A DNA stretch of 64,000 nucleotides, taken from the sequence record NC_048170.1; one strand, written 5' to 3'. Position 1 is the stretch's first letter. The number at the start of each line of letters is the position of its first letter. The notes beneath the pieces are model-generated. The model was not told the DNA's origin. It saw only the letters and a program-made list of their open reading frames with translations, and did no database searches. Shown here piece after piece: positions 5,024 to 48,898 of the stretch. The translations under genes and the position numbers were made by a program.

Positions 5024-5356
5024 TTAAAGTTTTAACGTATTGACGCCGCTTATAAAGGCGTTGATTTCATTGTCGATGTTACCGGTTTGCTCGATAATCT
5101 TCTCCACCATCAATCTTGGTTTGTTATAAGCAATACTTACAGCATCGGGACCATTCCCATACATGCTCGCCACGTAAATTCGAAGTTCTTTTAAACGATC
5201 AAGTAACAACTGCGCGATTTCCAGAACTTCTTCTGTGGCGGTCTGTACATTGCATTCGCGTAACTTGTGCTCTAACAGCGATGTCGCGGCATCGAGCATG
5301 GATGTGTATTTACGGTAGTTATAAATATCAATTATAGCTGTCTGATTCATATACAC
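5024..5356 (-). CDS. hypothetical protein
   Basis: ORF in operon. Confidence 0.6.
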   Translation of the reverse strand: MYMNQTAIIDIYNYRKYTSMLDAATSLLEHKLRECNVQTATEEVLEIAQLLLDRLKELRIYVASMYGNGPDAVSIAYNKPRLMVEKIIEQTGNIDNEINAFISGVNTLKL

Positions 5357-5361
5357 GTTAT

Positions 5362-5730
5362 TTATTTATCGGGGTCTGGAAAATAGTAAAATCGCCAATG
5401 TAACATAGAAATCGCATTTCTTATTCGATTCGCACGAACACGACGTCCGAGAAAGGACTTGTAGCAAGAATCGCAATCCATAAACAACTCATGGCTCGAT
5501 TTCATCAGAACCACGATGTCTCTTATATACGAATTGCAGTACTCGATAAACGGATCTGTATCGTACGTATATTTCCTCGCACTACCTATCCCCAACTCCC
5601 TATTTAACTCACGACAATTTATCATGAGCTTCACATAACGGATAAGCCGAACGAAGTCACGTAAATTACGATTAAACCAATATCGATACCAAAATGACCG
5701 TATATCCCAAACAGTTCTATTTAACTTCAT
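5362..5730 (-). CDS. hypothetical basic protein
   Basis: ORF in operon. Confidence 0.6.
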   Translation of the reverse strand: MKLNRTVWDIRSFWYRYWFNRNLRDFVRLIRYVKLMINCRELNRELGIGSARKYTYDTDPFIEYCNSYIRDIVVLMKSSHELFMDCDSCYKSFLGRRVRANRIRNAISMLHWRFYYFPDPDK

Positions 5731-6361
5731 TGATACCTTCTATTAGTTGTACAGCAACTTCTTTTTCGGTGCTATAAAAGAACTTGCGGTGGAACTGAAC
5801 AAGAAGCTTTTCGAATTTACATTGAACGATCTTTTTGCGTTCGATGTGACCCAGGGAGAGCAAAGCACCCATGCAGCGTACCGCTTGTTCGAGAACCTGT
5901 TTCGCGGTATCGTGATCGTCCGGTAACGGTAAATCTTCCTCGTCATCTTTAGCGATAAGACGTCTAATGATATTATCGATACGTATCTCATCACCGTTAA
6001 TGAAAGCGCCTTTCTCCCATTCATCAAATCGTTGATGGATTCGACGTTGTAAGTTGGCCCTGTCTTCCATTAACTCTTTCAACTGGCTTTCTAAGTTGAA
6101 TACGGTACGGCGGTCGGTATCAGTGAAGTTTTCCGATTCTTTGTACCACCAATCATTACGCGCTTGTAAGTCACTAATGCGAGAAATCGTCCGACGACAC
6201 TCGTTAACAAACGCATCACCGTTCGATAGCTCCGTACCGAAATAGCATTTGTATTTATAACGCATAACGCGGATTAGACGTTTCGCTAGAAAACCTTGCT
6301 TTTCCAGTTTCTTCTTCAATTGCGTGTATTTCTCTTCTTTTGTTTCCGCGATATCTTTCAT
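5717..6361 (-). CDS. hypothetical coiled-coil protein
   Basis: 214-aa ORF with ATGA coupling. Confidence 0.7.
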   Translation of the reverse strand: MKDIAETKEEKYTQLKKKLEKQGFLAKRLIRVMRYKYKCYFGTELSNGDAFVNECRRTISRISDLQARNDWWYKESENFTDTDRRTVFNLESQLKELMEDRANLQRRIHQRFDEWEKGAFINGDEIRIDNIIRRLIAKDDEEDLPLPDDHDTAKQVLEQAVRCMGALLSLGHIERKKIVQCKFEKLLVQFHRKFFYSTEKEVAVQLIEGINEVK

Positions 6362-6708
6362 GCCATATTCTCCGTTATATGCTTTAAACTGTTACGTATA
6401 CTTTTCAATCGACGATTAAATCCGGAACGATAACATTTCCGTACAACCCTTGGCGCTCGCGCTTTATTCGCCTGGTGAAGCTGTTCATTCACCTGCGACG
6501 CTATACGTAAACGTTCTAATAAAGACCTCAACCGAACGACAACCAACGGTTGTTCTTTCACCTTCTCTAGTTTGAGTAAAGAGTCAATATGAAACTTTAT
6601 ATCGATAATCTGATTCCTGTTTTTGCGGTACTGATGAATATACCAGCATCGACGAAAATAGGTGATGCTAAGCATAGGGTGGATCCTCTTCAACGCTATC
6701 TCCAACAA
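6358..6708 (-). CDS. hypothetical basic protein
   Basis: ORF in operon. Confidence 0.6.
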   Translation of the reverse strand: MLEIALKRIHPMLSITYFRRCWYIHQYRKNRNQIIDIKFHIDSLLKLEKVKEQPLVVVRLRSLLERLRIASQVNEQLHQANKARAPRVVRKCYRSGFNRRLKSIRNSLKHITENMA

Positions 6709-42967: not shown

Positions 42968-43606
42968 TTAACCTAATTTACCACCGGCGATGTTGGTGAA
43001 ATCTTCGCCATCAGGAACTTGCAGTAGGATACGTGCCATGTCCCAGTTGGTTAATGTGATTGCTTTATCATCGATACTCAGTTCTGGTAGGTCGAGTTCA
43101 TGATCATCAAACTCGTAGGAAATACTCCACGTTTCGTCTGTTTTAGGATCGGTTATCAACACACCGTCTGTTACACGCATGTAGTCCGGATGCAGTTCAT
43201 TACTGAATGTGCTGAACGGATCGGTGTAACATTCAGCATACCCCTCGATCTGCTGACGCTGTGCCTTCGTACGTAATTCAGGGCATGCCATGATCAGTTG
43301 TCGAGATATGCCGTTTGCGGCACGGAAGTCTTCCACGGTGTTACATGGCATAACCACATCGTCATGGAAGATGTTCTCCGATTGTCTCAGCAAAGTCTTA
43401 CGGAGTTCAGCATAGTTTATCTGATTGAATGCATCGAACGTTGCTAACGATTCAGCGTAAAAATGCTTTACGTGTTCGCTTGCACCGCCGAGACTATTCA
43501 TCAACTTGTGACCGTACTCCATGAAACTTTTATCGAGACCGGAGGACATTTCTCCGAACCTCAGTGCACGATAACTGTCTCGTCCACCTGTAAATATTTG
43601 CGCCAT
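42968..43606 (-). CDS. conserved chimallivirus protein downstream of nvRNAP beta'-N
   Basis: 212 aa; AAGGAGG RBS; core-block position. Confidence 0.7.
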   Translation of the reverse strand: MAQIFTGGRDSYRALRFGEMSSGLDKSFMEYGHKLMNSLGGASEHVKHFYAESLATFDAFNQINYAELRKTLLRQSENIFHDDVVMPCNTVEDFRAANGISRQLIMACPELRTKAQRQQIEGYAECYTDPFSTFSNELHPDYMRVTDGVLITDPKTDETWSISYEFDDHELDLPELSIDDKAITLTNWDMARILLQVPDGEDFTNIAGGKLG

Positions 43607-43621
43607 TACAGGCGTCCTCCT

Positions 43622-43858
43622 TTAGCAATGGGTGTTAGTTGCTTCTATTTCGTCAAGATAAGGTTCTACGTCATCGCCCTCCACGAATTCGTTGAACCAG
43701 CAGTCAATGGTAGAAATAACCGGTGACTGGTGTTCACATTTCTTAGATACCTTAAAAGGTACGTTATTATCCATCATACCGAGTTCGGGTCGAAAACGCC
43801 CGAAATGTTTCGCAGTCCAAATGTCTGGGACGATATGGTTGTTCATCGTGGTGTTCAG
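43622..43858 (-). CDS. nvRNAP beta'-N subunit, exon 3 (LNTTMNNH...)
   Basis: Begins CTG AAC right after the terminal G of intron 2; completes DFDGDA|LN in frame. Confidence 0.82.
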   Translation of the reverse strand: MNTTMNNHIVPDIWTAKHFGRFRPELGMMDNNVPFKVSKKCEHQSPVISTIDCWFNEFVEGDDVEPYLDEIEATNTHC

Positions 43859-44201
43859 CATGAGTCGCTACCTCATACCCGCAGCTTTACCTGCAGCTTC
43901 CGGTGTTACCGGAATGTCCAGAATACATCTTATCCATATTCCAAATGGAACGTAGGACTTCCGCGCTGGATCTCGCTTGAGACCACGTATTCGTTGAACG
44001 TTCTCCTGAACGGAGCTTCGCTGCTGATCGAACATTGTCGCGTACGGTAGGCGTCCCCGAAGGGATTGTCATTGAAGCCGCGTACATCCGCTACCTTGTT
44101 TCTACCTTATCGGTTCCTCTTACGAGGCGTAGCGGCCTTAGCCCTTCCCAGCAATTCACGGAATCCAAGCTCTTCCTTTCGGAAGGCAGGGCCTATGATT
44201 A
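43859..44201 (-). mobile_element. group I intron 2 (343 nt, ORF-less, IA-like)
   Basis: 5' splice site after U, terminal G. P AAUUGCUGGGAA (44145-56), Q GAUCAGCAGC (44020-29), R GUUCAACGAAUAC (43987-99), S AAGAUGUAUUC (43921-31). P3 GGAUUCCG/CGGAAGUCC; P9 hairpins present. Confidence 0.85.
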
Positions 44202-44214
44202 AGCGTCACCGTCG
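44202..44214 (-). CDS. nvRNAP beta'-N subunit, 13-nt micro-exon 2 (C GAC GGT GAC GCT, giving F-D-G-D-A)
   Basis: The only way to restore NADFDGD; pairs with P10 of intron 1 and P1 of intron 2. Confidence 0.85.
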
Positions 44215-45654
44215 CTTACGTGCACCGACGTTTATTAACTCATGGTTATCCACTGAAATACGGCGTTAGGGAAATAATCCTTCTTGCCGCGTTTTGAGAT
44301 TTGCAATGCCATATTACTCGGAGACAATCTGTAATGCCATGCTGCTTCATCGATAGAACTAAACTTCTTTGTTTCACCGTTATCAAAGATGATTTTCAAC
44401 GCCAGTTTAGGTAAATCGTCTTCCGTTTCTACTAATTCGAAAGAATCGATATTCTCTGCCAGCGTCAACGGATCAACTGGTAATATCAGCCAACCAGCAC
44501 GCTGCAATCCTCCACGTAGACTAATTTGTTTATTCAACGCAGGGGTAGCCATGCCAACTAACTTAGCAGCCAGCTTGCGGTCTTTAATATAAAGACGATA
44601 ATCTCCGGTATTATTAATAGCATACACACCAAAGTTATTGAACGATACCTTTCCAGCATCGGAACTAGTAAAGCCTACAAAGTCGTGGCTGTCGGTAGCC
44701 ACGTCGTATTTAAATGCTAATGGCTTGTTTCGACTGCCGCTAAGATACTTCTTGGCTGTAGATACCGATATGTTGAGATATCGTCCAATAGCATTCAAAC
44801 TTTCTAGTTCGATGATTTCTCCTGTCAATATGTCCTTTAACCGAACATTACCCATCGGTATTGGTGGTTTACCGACATAACCCAATTCACGATATGCGTG
44901 TTTCAAGTTATCTGAATCAGTAGCCCATTCCAAATTTTCTAGTCTGTTATCCCAACGCACCCCATTAAGATGATTAGGGACACGACGGATTATACCTGAC
45001 GTCGGATCTGGGTTAAATGTTTCAAGGACAATCTGATGATGGTATTTCACTTTATTGTTCCTAGTGAAAGCGCGATAGTTGTTTTTGCCCGACTTGGGTG
45101 GTTCAGTACGAAACAACACTGTCAGACTAGACACATCTACTATCGTACCGTTCTTATTAACAACGATACCATCAAAACCATTAACAGGACGATAATCAGA
45201 CAAACAATCTTCAGAAATTGCCTGTCCAACTAAAGGTTCACTCAATTTGACCTCCTTTATAAAAGAAGTCGGTGCACGTAATTATCGACTATATCTTCAT
45301 CCTCGTTGCGAGGAGTCTCCCGTTTTGGTCTGTGTTTAACAGAGCCTACTCTACTCGACATCGCGTCTTTCGATAGTCTGTGAGCACACATCTTAACGAA
45401 CATTCGTGGATTCCTAAACAGGTGAACGTTCTTGTTGAGATGCTTCGCTGCGGATTATTCCCGTCCTACCTCTTTTACCCTACCCAGTTCATTACGCTGG
45501 CCCTCATCTGTGTCACCACGATGAGTTGGTGTGTAGTCCGATTACAGAAACTTCCCGTCAATTAGAGAGTTTTAACTACGTTCCTGTTACCAGAAACCCG
45601 ACTCCGACGATATCAATAAATCAACGTAAGTTATTGATTTAATTGAAGAAACTG
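44215..45654 (-). mobile_element. group I intron 1 (1440 nt) carrying an HNH homing endonuclease
   Basis: Internal guide AUCGUCG-GAGUCGG (45598-45611) pairs with exon 1 CCGACUU (U.G at the splice site) and exon 2 CGACGGU. P 45552-63, Q 45447-56, R 45371-85, S 45288-98. A 14-bp P9 stem (45268-81/44216-29) encloses the ORF; terminal G at 44215. Confidence 0.9.
44235..45245 (-). CDS. intron-encoded HNH homing endonuclease (NUMOD4/I-HmuI-like with C-terminal HTH-type DNA-binding repeats)
   Basis: YHHQIVLETF...NHLNGVRWDNRLENLEWAT..DN..HA; TTG start with AAGGAGGT RBS. Confidence 0.9.
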   Translation of the reverse strand: MSEPLVGQAISEDCLSDYRPVNGFDGIVVNKNGTIVDVSSLTVLFRTEPPKSGKNNYRAFTRNNKVKYHHQIVLETFNPDPTSGIIRRVPNHLNGVRWDNRLENLEWATDSDNLKHAYRELGYVGKPPIPMGNVRLKDILTGEIIELESLNAIGRYLNISVSTAKKYLSGSRNKPLAFKYDVATDSHDFVGFTSSDAGKVSFNNFGVYAINNTGDYRLYIKDRKLAAKLVGMATPALNKQISLRGGLQRAGWLILPVDPLTLAENIDSFELVETEDDLPKLALKIIFDNGETKKFSSIDEAAWHYRLSPSNMALQISKRGKKDYFPNAVFQWITMS

Positions 45655-46910
45655 AAGTCGGCATTATAACCTTTGAGGATCATCACGCTTAACCCGATGG
45701 TGTTATCCTGCGGATCGCGTTTAACCTTGGTGATTTCAAGACATTGGTTACTGCTTCGGTCAAGTGATGGGTTTCGAACAAAGCCACACACAATCCCATC
45801 GAACGGTGTATCAGCAATAAGCTCATCGTGCAGCTCGCTCATCATCGGATGATAATTACGGACATGTTCCGCAACGAACGCACGTGCTGCTCTCGGTGAA
45901 TAACCACGATGGAATAACTTGGATTGGATATGTTCTTTATTGGTTAAAGTAAATGGTGCGTATGGGAAATGCAGATGATAATAACGATGGTTCGCTGTTA
46001 TCGAACTGATTACAGTACGCGTGGTGAATGGATGTAATGTACCTAATATGTTTTTACGTGTAATACCTTTCTTCTTACCGATGAACTCATCGAAAATCGC
46101 CGCGTGGTATTGCAGCAGCTTCAATTGCACTTTCGCCATCCAGTTTTCTTTCTTTCTGGCGCTCAAAGGTGTTGTTGGATGATAGATACTATTCAACGTA
46201 CCGATAGCATCGATCGCACCTTCCATTTTGCTATCTGCATAACGACCGGTCGGCGTATTTTCGATAACGAACATCATGGCCGCAGGAAAGCTGATATACT
46301 GACTGAAGAACTTATCACGATGGATTCGGATGAATTCTCGTAGCGTGTCAACTTTCTCCGTGTTCTTCGGTCCACGTAACGTAGGTCCTTTATACAAGAT
46401 CTCCATGATGCGATCGAAGTTCTGTATAAAGCTATTTACGCCACGACGTATCCCGAATACATCGAATTGCTGCTCCAGATAGTTCTTGAGTTCGATGGGT
46501 CGTTTTACATTTGGACGGTAACTGGCATCAATGAGCCACGTCATCGTTTCAAAGCTTTTGATATTCAACTCGCTTGCCAGCACGAGATGGACCAACGGGT
46601 TAATGAACGCATCGATTCCTTCAGGAACACGCGCCCAAACCGTCGAACGAATCTCTTGTTCTGCTGGGTAGGTTACAACCGTTTTACAGTTTGGACACAC
46701 CGTGCCGAGTAGCTCACCACGATTGTAGAAACCACAACCACATTGTGGTGTGATATCCAACGTATCGCTGGAATAAACACGGGTGATAAAACTGTTTAAT
46801 TTCTTCTTCTCTTCGACGACTTTTGTATCGTAATCGTTCAACAAAATCGGCGTAAAAGGAAGTTCTGCGAGCTGTCTATCGAAACTCACGATATCGAGCA
46901 TGATGGCCAT
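45655..46910 (-). CDS. non-virion RNAP beta'-like subunit, N-terminal part (phiKZ gp55-like), exon 1; spliced product 501 aa
   Basis: CGCG/CPNC Zn ribbon, KKGITRKNILG, RTVISS, RNPSL; ends GYNADF at the intron. Exons total 1256+13+237 = 1506 nt, in frame. Confidence 0.92.
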
Positions 46911-46952
46911 GGGGTATCTCCTACAAATGAAAAAGAACGTTAGGACGTATAA

Positions 46953-46976
46953 GGGAGGGAGGTTGCCCTCCCTCCC
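46953..46976 (-). terminator. terminator after chimallin
   Basis: Perfect 10-bp stem GGGAGGGAGG/CCTCCCTCCC with a 4-nt loop. Confidence 0.65.
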
Positions 46977-47002: not shown

Positions 47003-48898
47003 TTAGAACAGGTTGAATGCCCCACCCATGTTGTTAACGCCAACATTCGGACGATCGCTACGTGCGTAGATGTTACCGGAGATGTTACCCAGACCACGAG
47101 CACGTGCTGCCATGTTACCACGAACAGCGGTACCTGCCAGATGCTGGATGTTCTCAGGACGGATGGTGAAGCCAGCATCAGCAGCGGCTTCGATCAGCGC
47201 CTGCAGTGCTAACGGATCGAAGTCGTAACGCATTGCCCAGCCGGTTTGTTCCCAGCTACCAGACAGAACACGATCGATGATTTCGTGACGAGCGACAACA
47301 CGCTGAGACATCGTCATATCGGTACGGTCGAAGCTGTCTTCCCAAGCTTCTACGGTATCCGGGTTAGTGATGTTCATCATGTACAGATCGTCCATATCAC
47401 GAATATCGTGACGGTGACCATCCTGGTGGTTGTAGTGACCCAGCGGGATACGGTTACCGGTAGCGTAGACCAGCGGTAAGCCGTATTGATATTTCTTGCT
47501 GAAGCAACCCAGGGTAACATCATCGAACGCACGGTAAAGCGCTTTGTAACCTTCGGAGATTTCACGGACTTCACCTTCAACTTTGCCCGTATAGATCTTC
47601 TCAGCCGCCGGGATCATACGCAGCAGCCAGCTGTACTCACCTTCTTCCGGTACGTCGATAGAAATCAGCAGAGACGGATACAGTACCTGTTGCAGGAACT
47701 TGTAAATCTGCTCGTTGGTTTGAGTGGACAGATCCAGCGGTGCGGTAACTTCCGGATCCAGTACCATCGCCAGAGCACCCGGGTTATGCGGACCAATACC
47801 ACGGGCAGCGTTGCTGATTAAAGACTGTGCCCACGCCATACCGCTGTTCAGCGTAGCGATGGTGCCAATCAGCCCCAACACGAAAGTGTTCGGCGTGAAC
47901 GCATCCAGCTCCAGCGGGTAAGCGCTGGTCATCACGTAACGCGGCTGGTATTGTACAGTCGGCGGTACCGGATAACCGTTAACCAGAACAGGGCCTTGGT
48001 TGAAGGTCGGGTTCTGCGGGCTGTAGGTCAGGTCGATGTAACCGGTGGTGGCGACCAGACGCTGTTGACTATCGTAATCGCTCATCGCTTGACGGATACG
48101 GTTAGAGATAGTTACAGTGATGTCAGAACGCACAGGGTTACCAACAATATCGCTGTCCTGCATACCGCTGGTGTTATACTGAACGCTGCTGATTGGCTGA
48201 TCGCTTGCCATCATGCCCAGGTTGAACTGCGGCAGACCCAGTTTATCACCGAGACGGATTTCGATCGCGGTTTGGATTGCGTTATCTGCAGCAGACAGCA
48301 GGGTGGTTGCCAGATGCGCAGATTCAGCGGTGATTTCATTGGTCACCACAGCCAGACCAGCGATACGAGCAGTACCATTAGACTTACCGCCAATAGCTGC
48401 ATACATTGCCGCCATGACTTCGTTGATGAACGTACCGTTCAGGTTATCAACCCAGGTACGCGGTACCAGAATGTTACCATGCGGACCTTGTTCTTCACGA
48501 CGCGGCAGCGGAGCCAAACCGGCAACCAGCGGAAGCACATAACCAAAGAAGTGGTTATGGTCACCAACTTTTGCACCACTCATAACGACCAGGGTCGGAT
48601 ACGGTACGCTGTACTGGTTCGGGTCAACCGCAACAAAGATGAAGTCGTCTTTGAACCGGGTATCTTCCAGATATTTCTCCATCAGACGACGGAGATTCAG
48701 TACCTGCTCGGAGCCAGTATTACGGCTAATACGACGGCTCAGTGTACGGTTGATCGTACGCATCGTATGAGTTACTTTAGGCTGGCCAGCAAAATCTGCA
48801 GCGGTTTCCAGCGCCTCATCAGCACGTTGTGCGGTGCGGGTTTCAGCTGCACGAATTTCTACATTATCGTTACCGTTATTACGTACGTCTAAGCCCAT
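47003..48898 (-). CDS. chmA: chimallin, the major phage nuclear shell protein
   Basis: 631 aa; directly upstream of the gp55-like RNAP subunit (phiKZ gp54 position); sequence recalled as matching Goslar-type chimallin; codon choice typical of high expression. Confidence 0.92.
   Translation of the reverse strand: MGLDVRNNGNDNVEIRAAETRTAQRADEALETAADFAGQPKVTHTMRTINRTLSRRISRNTGSEQVLNLRRLMEKYLEDTRFKDDFIFVAVDPNQYSVPYPTLVVMSGAKVGDHNHFFGYVLPLVAGLAPLPRREEQGPHGNILVPRTWVDNLNGTFINEVMAAMYAAIGGKSNGTARIAGLAVVTNEITAESAHLATTLLSAADNAIQTAIEIRLGDKLGLPQFNLGMMASDQPISSVQYNTSGMQDSDIVGNPVRSDITVTISNRIRQAMSDYDSQQRLVATTGYIDLTYSPQNPTFNQGPVLVNGYPVPPTVQYQPRYVMTSAYPLELDAFTPNTFVLGLIGTIATLNSGMAWAQSLISNAARGIGPHNPGALAMVLDPEVTAPLDLSTQTNEQIYKFLQQVLYPSLLISIDVPEEGEYSWLLRMIPAAEKIYTGKVEGEVREISEGYKALYRAFDDVTLGCFSKKYQYGLPLVYATGNRIPLGHYNHQDGHRHDIRDMDDLYMMNITNPDTVEAWEDSFDRTDMTMSQRVVARHEIIDRVLSGSWEQTGWAMRYDFDPLALQALIEAAADAGFTIRPENIQHLAGTAVRGNMAARARGLGNISGNIYARSDRPNVGVNNMGGAFNLF

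Follow-up and report, generated by a model that had tools for sequence, protein, structure and literature searches.

We found that the gene downstream of the chimallin gene in Escherichia phage vB_EcoM_Goslar is, in all likelihood, split inside its NADFDGD codons by two independent, tandem and mobile group I introns that surround a coding exon of only 13 nt. The gene encodes the N-terminal beta-prime subunit of the phage non-virion RNA polymerase (nvRNAP) and is a homologue of phiKZ gp55; its spliced sequence contains both the Mg2+-binding loop NADFDGD, which in this subunit belongs to a double-psi beta-barrel, and the gp55 homology that characterize this subunit. The stretch of DNA analyzed here (hereafter, the window) comprises 64,000 nucleotides of NC_048170.1, and window positions 43600-46950, read on the minus strand, are 100% identical to positions 167600-170950 of MK327938/NC_048170. 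Features of the gene are given below as window positions, all on the minus strand.

Exon 1 (Goslar_00188; 45655-46910) ends with ...GGT TAT AAT GCC GAC TT, and this end agrees with the list of open reading frames (ORFs), with homologues and with a public contig, L029, which is contiguous to 45655. It is followed by intron 1 (44215-45654; 1440 nt; CAGTTTC...CGTAAG), which matches the Rfam model RF00028 just below its gathering score, has its terminal guanosine (omega-G) at 44215 and is exactly missing from L029. The 13-nt micro-exon CGACGGTGACGCT (44202-44214; C GAC GGT GAC GCT) is the sole sequence between the exon blocks in L029; it supplies the last base of the Phe codon and then the D-G-D-A codons of NADFDGDA. 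Intron 2 (43847-44201; 355 nt) has no ORF. It opens with TAATCATAGG at 44201 (in a longer read, TAATCATAGGCC) and ends with ...CUGAACACCACG (...CACCACG) at its omega-G, G43847, after which the RNA continues with AUGAAC; these ends are supported by covariation and by the exact absence of the intron from L029 and from the related contigs L009-L014. Exon 3 (43622-43846; ATG AAC AAC CAT...) contains 74 codons and the TAA stop (43624-43622), in agreement with the L029 junction and with homologues, and the second junction, GACGCT/ATGAAC, encodes D-A-M-N. In silico splicing gave a product of 497 aa (1256+13+222 nt) that reads ...NADFDGDAMNNHIVPD, with GYNADFDGDAMNNH in the catalytic loop stretch and the peptide GYNADFDGDAMNNHIVPDIWTAK, free of LNTT, across the junctions. 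A preliminary description of this window had placed the end of exon 1, intron 1, the micro-exon and the start of intron 2 at these same positions, and had proposed two tandem group I introns flanking a 13-nt exon that supplies (F)DGDA of NADFDGD; all of this matches the sequence, L029 and relatives. It had also ended intron 2 at G43859, and in this it was off by 12 nt, as judged from L029, from relatives lacking the intron and from covariation in helix P9.2. The protein length of 501 aa, the junction ...GACGCTCTGAAC and the LNTT-bearing peptide for mass spectrometry that it had predicted from this site were consequently wrong.

The joined products were spliced in silico with both candidate 3' splice sites of intron 2 and then looked up, as exact matches, among approximately 15 billion public proteins. 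The 497-aa product was found (P0025), and the 501-aa product was absent. P0025 is encoded on the Logan contig SRR32224763_123 (L029; 8818 nt), which consists of window positions 47128-45654, CGACGGTGACGCT and positions 43846-36516, 100.000% identical on both sides and with nothing else between. An Rfam scan found no group I signal in L029, and its product matches PF00623 (RNA_pol_Rpb1_2). L029 matches the laboratory phage without a single base difference, stops partway through a gene and exactly lacks both introns, and for these reasons it is probably a transcript assembly from a Goslar infection rather than a DNA genome; RNA-seq data sets of Goslar exist. The exact ligated sequence in this contig would fit precise excision and exon ligation. 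Under the refuting condition set in the preliminary description, a different junction in cDNA, its first junction is upheld and its second is refuted. Neither the single-spliced product (...DFDGDA followed by a stop) nor the exon-skipped product (...NADL followed by a stop) had an exact match in the protein collection.

Next, we compared the product with homologues. A tblastn search with exon 3 alone against phages matched only Goslar; therefore, the comparison was made through full-length proteins found with exon 1. This query identified two full-length, uninterrupted homologues, P0002 (496 aa, 64% identical to exon 1) and P0003 (491 aa, 62% identical). Both are intronless and read NADFDGDAMNHH and NADFDGDEMNNH, respectively (longer stretches, ...GYNADFDGDAMNHHSAPD... 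and ...AYNADFDGDEMNNHIPPD...), with DGDAMNHH and DGDEMNNH at the motif. As in Goslar, the gene immediately upstream of that for P0002 encodes chimallin. P0002 matches phiKZ gp55 in the nvRNAP structure PDB 7OGP (chain A, named for PHIKZ055 and PHIKZ056.1 together; E 2.8e-79), and also bacterial beta-prime around the catalytic motif. Exon 1 alone has no Pfam match, and PF00623 was found on P0002 as on the L029 product. In 7OGP, phiKZ gp55 reads NADFDGDQLNLTLMPD, with the same spacing as the 497-aa product. The junction given earlier, NADFDGDA-LNTT-MNNHIVPD, is four residues longer than the homologues, and moving the site 12 nt on, to G43847, gives an exact fit. In the distant homologues P0004, P0006, P0007, P0009 and P0010, the ORFs break inside NAD(F)DG.

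We also examined relatives of Goslar. The 90%-identity cluster of the protein has 159 members, whose contigs were fetched and cut between fixed exon anchors. The cluster ORFs end at 423, 449, 434, 421 or 422 aa and are paired with downstream ORFs of 79 or 74 aa. The analysis showed eight intron arrangements, with one to three introns each, among relatives that are approximately 98% identical at the locus. Goslar has introns 1 (with an HNH ORF) and 2 around its 13-nt micro-exon. L014 has only an ORF-less intron 1 and no micro-exon, and L009-L013 have introns 0 and 1 around the 13-nt micro-exon ATAATGCAGATTT. Introns 0, 1 and 2 are all present in L003, L019, L023, L024, L025 and L028, together with two 13-nt micro-exons, the same ATAATGCAGATTT and CGACGG(G/T)GA(T/C)GCT. 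Introns A and B surround an 18-nt micro-exon (GACTTTGACGGTGATGCC) in L005-L008 and L020, and intron A occurs alone, without a micro-exon, in L021 and L026. L027 has only intron 0, with an HNH ORF and no micro-exon, and L015 has intron 0, again with an HNH ORF, and intron E around an 11-nt micro-exon (ATAACGCAGAT). These introns occupy five insertion sites within approximately 30 nt, namely site a after GGGT (intron 0), site b after AAYGCT (intron A), site e after GCAGAT (intron E), site c after GAYTT (intron 1) and site d after GAYGCY (introns 2 and B).

In silico splicing of any of the alleles yields one and the same peptide, GLSVMILKGYNADFDGDAMNNHIVPDIW, and such a match of eight arrangements is far beyond chance. 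In L009-L014, which lack intron 2, the sequence is unbroken (CGACGGAGACGCTATGAAC; ...CGACGGAGACGCTATGAACAAC, with GACGCT/ATGAAC), which pins the two ends of intron 2 in Goslar to 44201 and 43847. Differences between strains within the micro-exon are only synonymous (GGT/GGG/GGA and GAC/GAT) and keep DGDA, as expected of coding sequence. We also considered a twintron and rejected it, because the 13 nt between the introns are retained in L029 and encode conserved residues, and because each intron stands alone in some relatives. In the three-intron relatives, where the region corresponds to approximately 45680-43840, the two micro-exons are ATAATGCAGATTT and CGACGGGGATGCT; P10 of intron 0 can use bases 2-6 of the first (UAAUG/CAUUA), and P1 of intron 1 uses its bases 7-13. 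In other strains, the ORF-less intron-2 family also occupies another site, which lies 18 nt upstream. Intron A is a paralogue of B/2, and both follow AYGCY, matching their 3-nt guide GGC, and this fits an ectopic transposition, which may have occurred via reverse splicing or illegitimate homing.

RF00028 gave a weak match to intron 2 (16.7 bits, E 0.32, at 44163-43959). We aligned 15 distinct members of the intron-2 family (site-d copies of the Goslar and L005 types and site-b copies), which are 73-84% identical to one another and approximately 55-59% identical to the other introns, and scored a fold of 88 pairs comprising P1, P2, P3, P4-P6, P7 (as a pseudoknot), P7.1, P8, P9, P9.1 and P9.2. 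In Goslar, P1 pairs GCU/UA with UAGGC (44195-44191), with a U.G pair at the 5' splice site; P3 pairs 44163-44157 with 43965-43959, P7 pairs 43992-43987 with 43926-43921, P9 pairs 43914-43908 with 43904-43898, and P9.2 pairs 43878-43872 with 43864-43858. Across the alignment, 99.1% of the cells are paired. As many as 34 of the 88 pairs change on both sides, as against 1-3 after a shift of the partners by one to three columns, and none of 500 shuffles matched the covariation score. Covarying pairs include three of the six in P7 (GAAUAC/GUAUUC in Goslar, GAUCAU/AUGAUC in intron A and GAGUA/UACUC in intron B) and all six in P7.1; P3 and P4 are invariant. Intron 2 therefore shows the core fold of a group I intron, including the P3/P7 pseudoknot, along with the U.G pair at the 5' site and, at its true 3' end, the terminal G. 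In the Michel-Westhof classes, a hairpin placed between P7 and P3' (P7.1) is the hallmark of subgroup IA, the usual type in phages; intron 2, which has a P7.1, presumably belongs to this subgroup. The U.G wobble at the 5' splice site of group I introns is almost universal; in intron B, which occupies the Goslar intron-2 site in L005-L008 and L020, the splice site is preceded by C, which gives C-G in P1 (GCC/GGC) instead.

The same alignment bears on the 3' end of intron 2. If the intron ended at G43859, as described earlier, exon 3 would start with CTGAAC and the protein would have 501 aa, including NADFDGDALNTTMNNH. The frame would remain open, the CUGA that follows G43859 could pair with UCA of the guide loop, and the sole substitution within the 12-nt stretch, ACC to ACT in L003, would be synonymous. 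However, we consider this end very improbable. The 501-aa protein is missing from the collection in which the 497-aa protein is present, L029 joins GCT to ATGAAC, alleles without intron 2 read GACGCTATGAAC, and neither the homologues nor phiKZ gp55 have a four-residue insert after DGDx. Moreover, G43859 occupies the second position in the 3' strand of P9.2, where it is paired with U43877, and its column is A in nine and G in six of the 15 members; all 15 have G immediately before the 3' exon (ATGAAC/GAC). The corresponding 12-nt tail of intron B (UUGAAGAUAUUG) would encode LKIL rather than LNTT. A candidate P10 of 4 bp can be formed between AUGA (43846-43843) and UCAU (44198-44195), where the upstream site offers only UGA/UCA. 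Introns 0, A, B, 2 and E have in common a conserved 3' module, which consists of a hairpin with the loop GUAGCGA and a tail YUGAAS(N)5-7G, and the 12 nt formerly read as LNTT (43858-43847) are part of this tail. For a pairing partner of YUGAAS, the candidate CUUCA in the P5 region does not covary, and we make no call.

At gathering thresholds, Rfam gave no match in the whole window, and the introns were reported only with E-value thresholds. In the RF00028 search that had been suggested earlier as a check, intron 1 scored 46.9 bits (E 3e-10; 45645-45269; full-length match to model positions 1-253) against a gathering score of 50; in L003, the ORF-less intron 1 scored 47 bits and intron 0 scored 31 bits. 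Intron 1 has an IA-like architecture with an HNH ORF near its 3' end. Its internal guide, 5'-AUCGUCG GAGUCGG-3' (45598-45611), was read from the sequence. The second half, GAGUCGG (45604-45598), pairs with CCGACUU of exon 1 as P1, with a U.G pair at the splice site, and the first half, AUCGUCG (45611-45605), pairs with CGACGGU, nucleotides 1-7 of the micro-exon, as P10. P1 covaries with the exon, given that relatives have CAGAUUU/GGAUCUG, that is, two double compensatory changes. The 6-bp core of P10 (CGACGG/CCGUCG) is kept in most alleles, with G.U at one position in Goslar and L024 and a C-U mismatch in L023. P1 with its U.G pair, P10 and the terminal G are all as in group I introns. These results agree with the preliminary description, in which both 5' splice sites followed a U paired with G, both introns ended in G, and the micro-exon was divided into seven nucleotides for P10 of intron 1 and a last three for P1 of intron 2.

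In relatives, ORF-less alleles of intron 1 (376-380 nt) occupy the same site and end 8-10 nt after P7 (...UAUAGUCGAUAACAG). The last bases of the intron are ...AAG in Goslar and ...CAG in the ORF-less alleles. Comparison of the ORF-less ...GUCGAUAACAG with Goslar ...GUCGAUAA, which is followed by stem, ORF, stem and AAG, shows that a 12-bp stem and the ORF it encloses are inserted three bases before the omega-G at 44215; the stem, read from the sequence, is formed by ACGUGCACCGAC (45268-45279) and GUCGGUGCACGU (44229-44218). The ORF (44235-45245; 336 aa) has a TTG start with the ribosome-binding site AAGGAGG before it. It matches HNH_3 at 31.1 bits, above the cut-off of 24.8, and NUMOD1 at 24.0 bits, above the cut-off of 22.8, so that an HNH catalytic domain and a NUMOD DNA-binding module are encoded within the intron; I-HmuI_NUMOD-like scored 16.9 bits, under the cut-off of 27, and a PDB sequence search gave no match. 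We regard it as a putative I-HmuI-like HNH/NUMOD1 homing endonuclease. The presence/absence polymorphism and the divergent ORFs in similar ribozymes would fit mobility, although indirectly. In intron 0 of L015 and L027, the HNH ORF lies in the P1 loop, between the 5' splice site and the guide GCCC. These two endonucleases are 55% identical within similar ribozymes, and they show approximately 22-24% identity to the Goslar intron-1 endonuclease over the C-terminal half of the latter. In L015 (GCA_021016215.1, a Shigella sonnei assembly), introns 0 and E share an identical stretch of approximately 70 nt (CGCCTACGGGCGTTAGGGCCAAGCGGCGTGGGAAACCACCGGTTGCAAGACCGCCGAAACGGGAAGCCCC; approximately 1231-1300 and 1590-1660 of the segment), which suggests recombination or gene conversion between tandem introns. 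A sixth site was seen in L030 (ERZ2648042 NODE_116, 187 kb; region 5250-6640), a more distant chimallivirus with a 39%-identical homologue, where one HNH-bearing group I intron follows GAC GGT, between G and D of DFDGD.

Several points weigh against the reading of two spliced introns with these boundaries. Intron 1 falls just under the Rfam gathering threshold and intron 2 far under it. The candidate P10 of intron 2 is only 4 bp long and requires one bulged base, and CUGA after G43859 can also pair with part of the guide, so that the 501-aa form could conceivably arise from a cryptic 3' site as a minor product, although not as the main one. In addition, L029 could in principle be DNA of an intron-free Goslar variant. 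In that case, the boundaries would still be fixed, but splicing would not be proven.

The public annotation of the locus is different. Both GenBank records contain neither a joined coding sequence (CDS) nor a second intron, and mark only intron 1. They show a 423-aa 'RNA polymerase beta subunit / hypothetical protein' ending with NADFSFFN (46910-45639), an ncRNA Intron_gpI (45645-45269), a NUMOD1 domain protein / HNH endonuclease (45245-44235) and a 79-aa hypothetical protein (Goslar_00185 / HOV27_gp185; 43861-43622). The six-frame ORF from exon 1 likewise halts at 423 aa, and, as had been pointed out earlier, neither the six-frame track nor the annotation shows the join. Taken literally, the records describe a 423-aa protein, a separate 79-aa protein and one intron-like RNA, with no splicing into a joined CDS. 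Although both of them carry this split-ORF annotation, we give it hardly any credence. The 423-aa product would be without the catalytic aspartates of DGD, the 79-aa ORF begins within a ribozyme supported by covariation, and the joined 497-aa protein is present in public data and aligns end to end with P0002 and phiKZ gp55. The split-ORF model is ruled out by L029 and the intron-less alleles; one protein made as two polypeptides and one single large intron were also considered and rejected. The start codon of the 79-aa ORF, ATG at 43861, falls within intron 2, and its first five codons, MLNTT, are intron sequence; in relatives, the downstream ORFs have 74 aa and begin with MNNH. The 497-aa sequence is what expression, knock-down or modelling of the Goslar nvRNAP requires, and the records split this core gene.

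From these pairings, we propose that each intron folds alone and splices by the usual two-step mechanism initiated by guanosine. Intron 1 would pick its 5' site via P1 (CCGACUU/GAGUCGG) and align the micro-exon via P10 (CGACGGU/AUCGUCG). Intron 2 would pick its 5' site via the last three bases of the micro-exon (GCU/GGC) and join them to ATGAAC at 43846, probably with help from the 4-bp P10 (AUGA/UCAU). The mature mRNA would consist of GCCGACTT, CGACGGTGACGCT and ATGAACAAC in direct succession, the joined cDNA would read GCCGACTTCGACGGTGACGCTATGAACAAC, and the loop ...GYNADFDGDAMNNHIVPD... would be intact. The 13-nt exon would be divided without overlap, with bases 1-7 on the intron-1 guide for the second step and bases 11-13 as the 5'-exon strand of intron-2 P1. 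Given that the pairings do not overlap, base pairing alone forces no splicing order, and steric interference between the neighbouring introns is conceivable.

Both splicing events are needed for active nvRNAP. This introduces the question of whether the twin-intron layout is a selected regulatory device that gates or times nvRNAP via ordered or condition-dependent splicing, or via exon skipping to an inactive product. An intact catalytic loop requires both events, and skipping of the micro-exon in silico gives ...NADL and a stop. Tandem group I introns of the phages SIOphi and Twort are documented to cause exon skipping (PMC11878797), and transcription is apart from translation in chimalliviruses (PMC12908238), so that splicing cannot depend on ribosomes as in T4. 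However, such a device seems unlikely. The layout is not conserved, since close relatives have one to three introns at five sites and no intron is present in the 64%-identical homologue; the pairings of the two guides with the micro-exon impose no order; and the absence of exon-skipped and single-spliced products from the protein collection is a further, weak negative. The gating of nvRNAP activation and the imposed splicing order that had been proposed for Goslar are therefore unsupported, in view of a layout that varies among approximately 98%-identical phages and of pairings that do not overlap. Site occupancy that varies so freely, together with its absence from the 64%-identical homologue, argues for repeated invasion of a conserved target by mobile, selfish introns rather than for a conserved device. 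The paralogy of introns A and B/2, the stretch shared by introns 0 and E of L015 and the divergence of the intron-0 endonucleases of L015 and L027 fit this view. The conserved stretch is probably a favoured landing site for homing introns, and the layout would be a by-product of repeated invasion and co-conversion among co-infecting Goslar-like phages.

A more tentative possibility, which we rate as less probable than not, is that the approximately 30 nt encoding K-G-Y-N-A-D-F-D-G-D-A-M are an arena of intron-intron conflict among co-infecting Goslar-like phages. This reading draws on at least five sites, with a sixth in the lineage that is 39% identical, on ribozymes of three families and on HNH endonucleases of two families or more. 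By analogy with the interference competition between PhiPA3 and phiKZ, ORF-less introns may act as 'target spoilers', which split the recognition site and so protect the genome from the nicking endonuclease of a rival. If this is true, then micro-exons of 11-18 nt are nearly all committed to the guides of two ribozymes, and neighbouring introns would have to splice cooperatively.

Intron-split polymerase genes have been reported from other phages. Chimallivirus RNAP genes are known to harbour, at catalytic residues, group I introns that encode HNH endonucleases. In phiKZ, these are gp55/56, gp71-73 and gp178-180 (PMC11512511, citing Ceyssens 2014), and the joint name of chain A in 7OGP agrees with this for gp55, as the preliminary description had stated. 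The phiKZ gp55/gp56.1 gene is orthologous to that of Goslar; it is likewise interrupted by a group I intron, which has an HNH endonuclease (gp56), and its parts are spliced into one subunit. However, it has one intron and no micro-exon, and its insertion site, judged from alignment ends, seems to be different. The alignments of gp55 of the phiKZ type (fnug, SL2, PA_ZH1 and PhiPizzaParty) stop approximately 35-38 residues before NADFDGD, near the RNPSLxR motif, so the phiKZ gp55/56 intron seems to lie at a different conserved site, approximately 35 codons upstream of NADFDGD. In PhiPA3, the gp210 intron is a group I intron with an HNH endonuclease at the catalytic aspartates of the virion RNA polymerase (vRNAP) beta gene, and its endonuclease gives a competitive advantage in co-infection (Birkholz et al. 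2024, PMC11620839). This intron resembles the Goslar introns in its position beside catalytic aspartates but is a single intron in the beta subunit of the virion polymerase. The I-HmuI and I-HmuII introns of the Bacillus phages SPO1 and SP82, reportedly described by Goodrich-Blair and Shub in 1994 and 1996, are said to be IA-type introns in a polymerase gene with HNH nicking endonucleases. Like intron 0 of L015 and L027, they combine similar ribozymes with very divergent ORFs; they differ in having one site per gene, as opposed to multiple neighbouring sites and paralogues without an ORF.

For Twort and the Bastillevirinae, PMC11878797 describes a single phage gene with several group I introns in tandem, a 'small exon between two introns' and skipping of exons. 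Introns of the Twort/phiNIT1 type are similar to those of Goslar in that several self-splicing introns interrupt one essential gene and leave short internal exons that are missed by homology annotation. The text of PMC11878797 gives no size for the Twort/phiNIT1 exon; the Goslar exon has 13 nt (11-18 in relatives) and lies inside a catalytic motif. Furthermore, all or most of the bases of the Goslar micro-exon are in P10 or P1 pairings, up to three introns stand within approximately 30 nt, and the host is a nucleus-forming jumbo phage. Mini-exons of fewer than approximately four codons between group I or II introns 'occur regularly' in fungal and protist mitochondria and are routinely missed by annotators (PMC10352661). 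Those introns are organellar and often aided by maturases, whereas the Goslar case concerns a bacteriophage gene whose introns are polymorphic between nearly identical genomes. Our search of the literature on Goslar and chimalliviruses gave no description of a second intron, a micro-exon or a multi-site hot spot; in one paper, the gene is called nvRNAP beta-prime(1) and its transcription start is mapped, with no mention of splicing. The mechanism would be ordinary group I splicing and homing, and the arrangement is an unusual, so far undescribed variant.

A 13-nt exon between two ribozyme cores of approximately 355-380 nt is an extreme natural test of splice-site choice in a crowded setting, and relatives have two such exons between three ribozymes, in a phage in which transcription is separated from translation. 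The eight arrangements in near-identical phages also constitute a natural experiment on homing, co-conversion, ectopic transposition and competition between introns and endonucleases.

Near-complete Goslar-like genomes, as contigs of 235-247 kb, were found in many enterobacterial draft assemblies, such as those of L005, L006 and L015 (GCA_008101945.1, GCA_015324645.1 and GCA_021016215.1, respectively), and cluster members are named for Salmonella, Shigella, E. coli and Enterobacter hormaechei. No match was found in complete RefSeq E. coli genomes, and a pattern scan of genome contigs also gave no match. The contigs in draft assemblies suggest carriage of, or contamination by, lytic jumbo phages. 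Upstream of the nvRNAP gene, the window contains the adjoining 631-aa ORF of chimallin, the nuclear shell protein (47003-48898). Between the two genes, at 46950-46975 on the minus strand, there is a strong GC-rich hairpin (GGGAGGGAGGGCAACCTCCCTCCC), which is probably a terminator or attenuator, and L029 reads through it.

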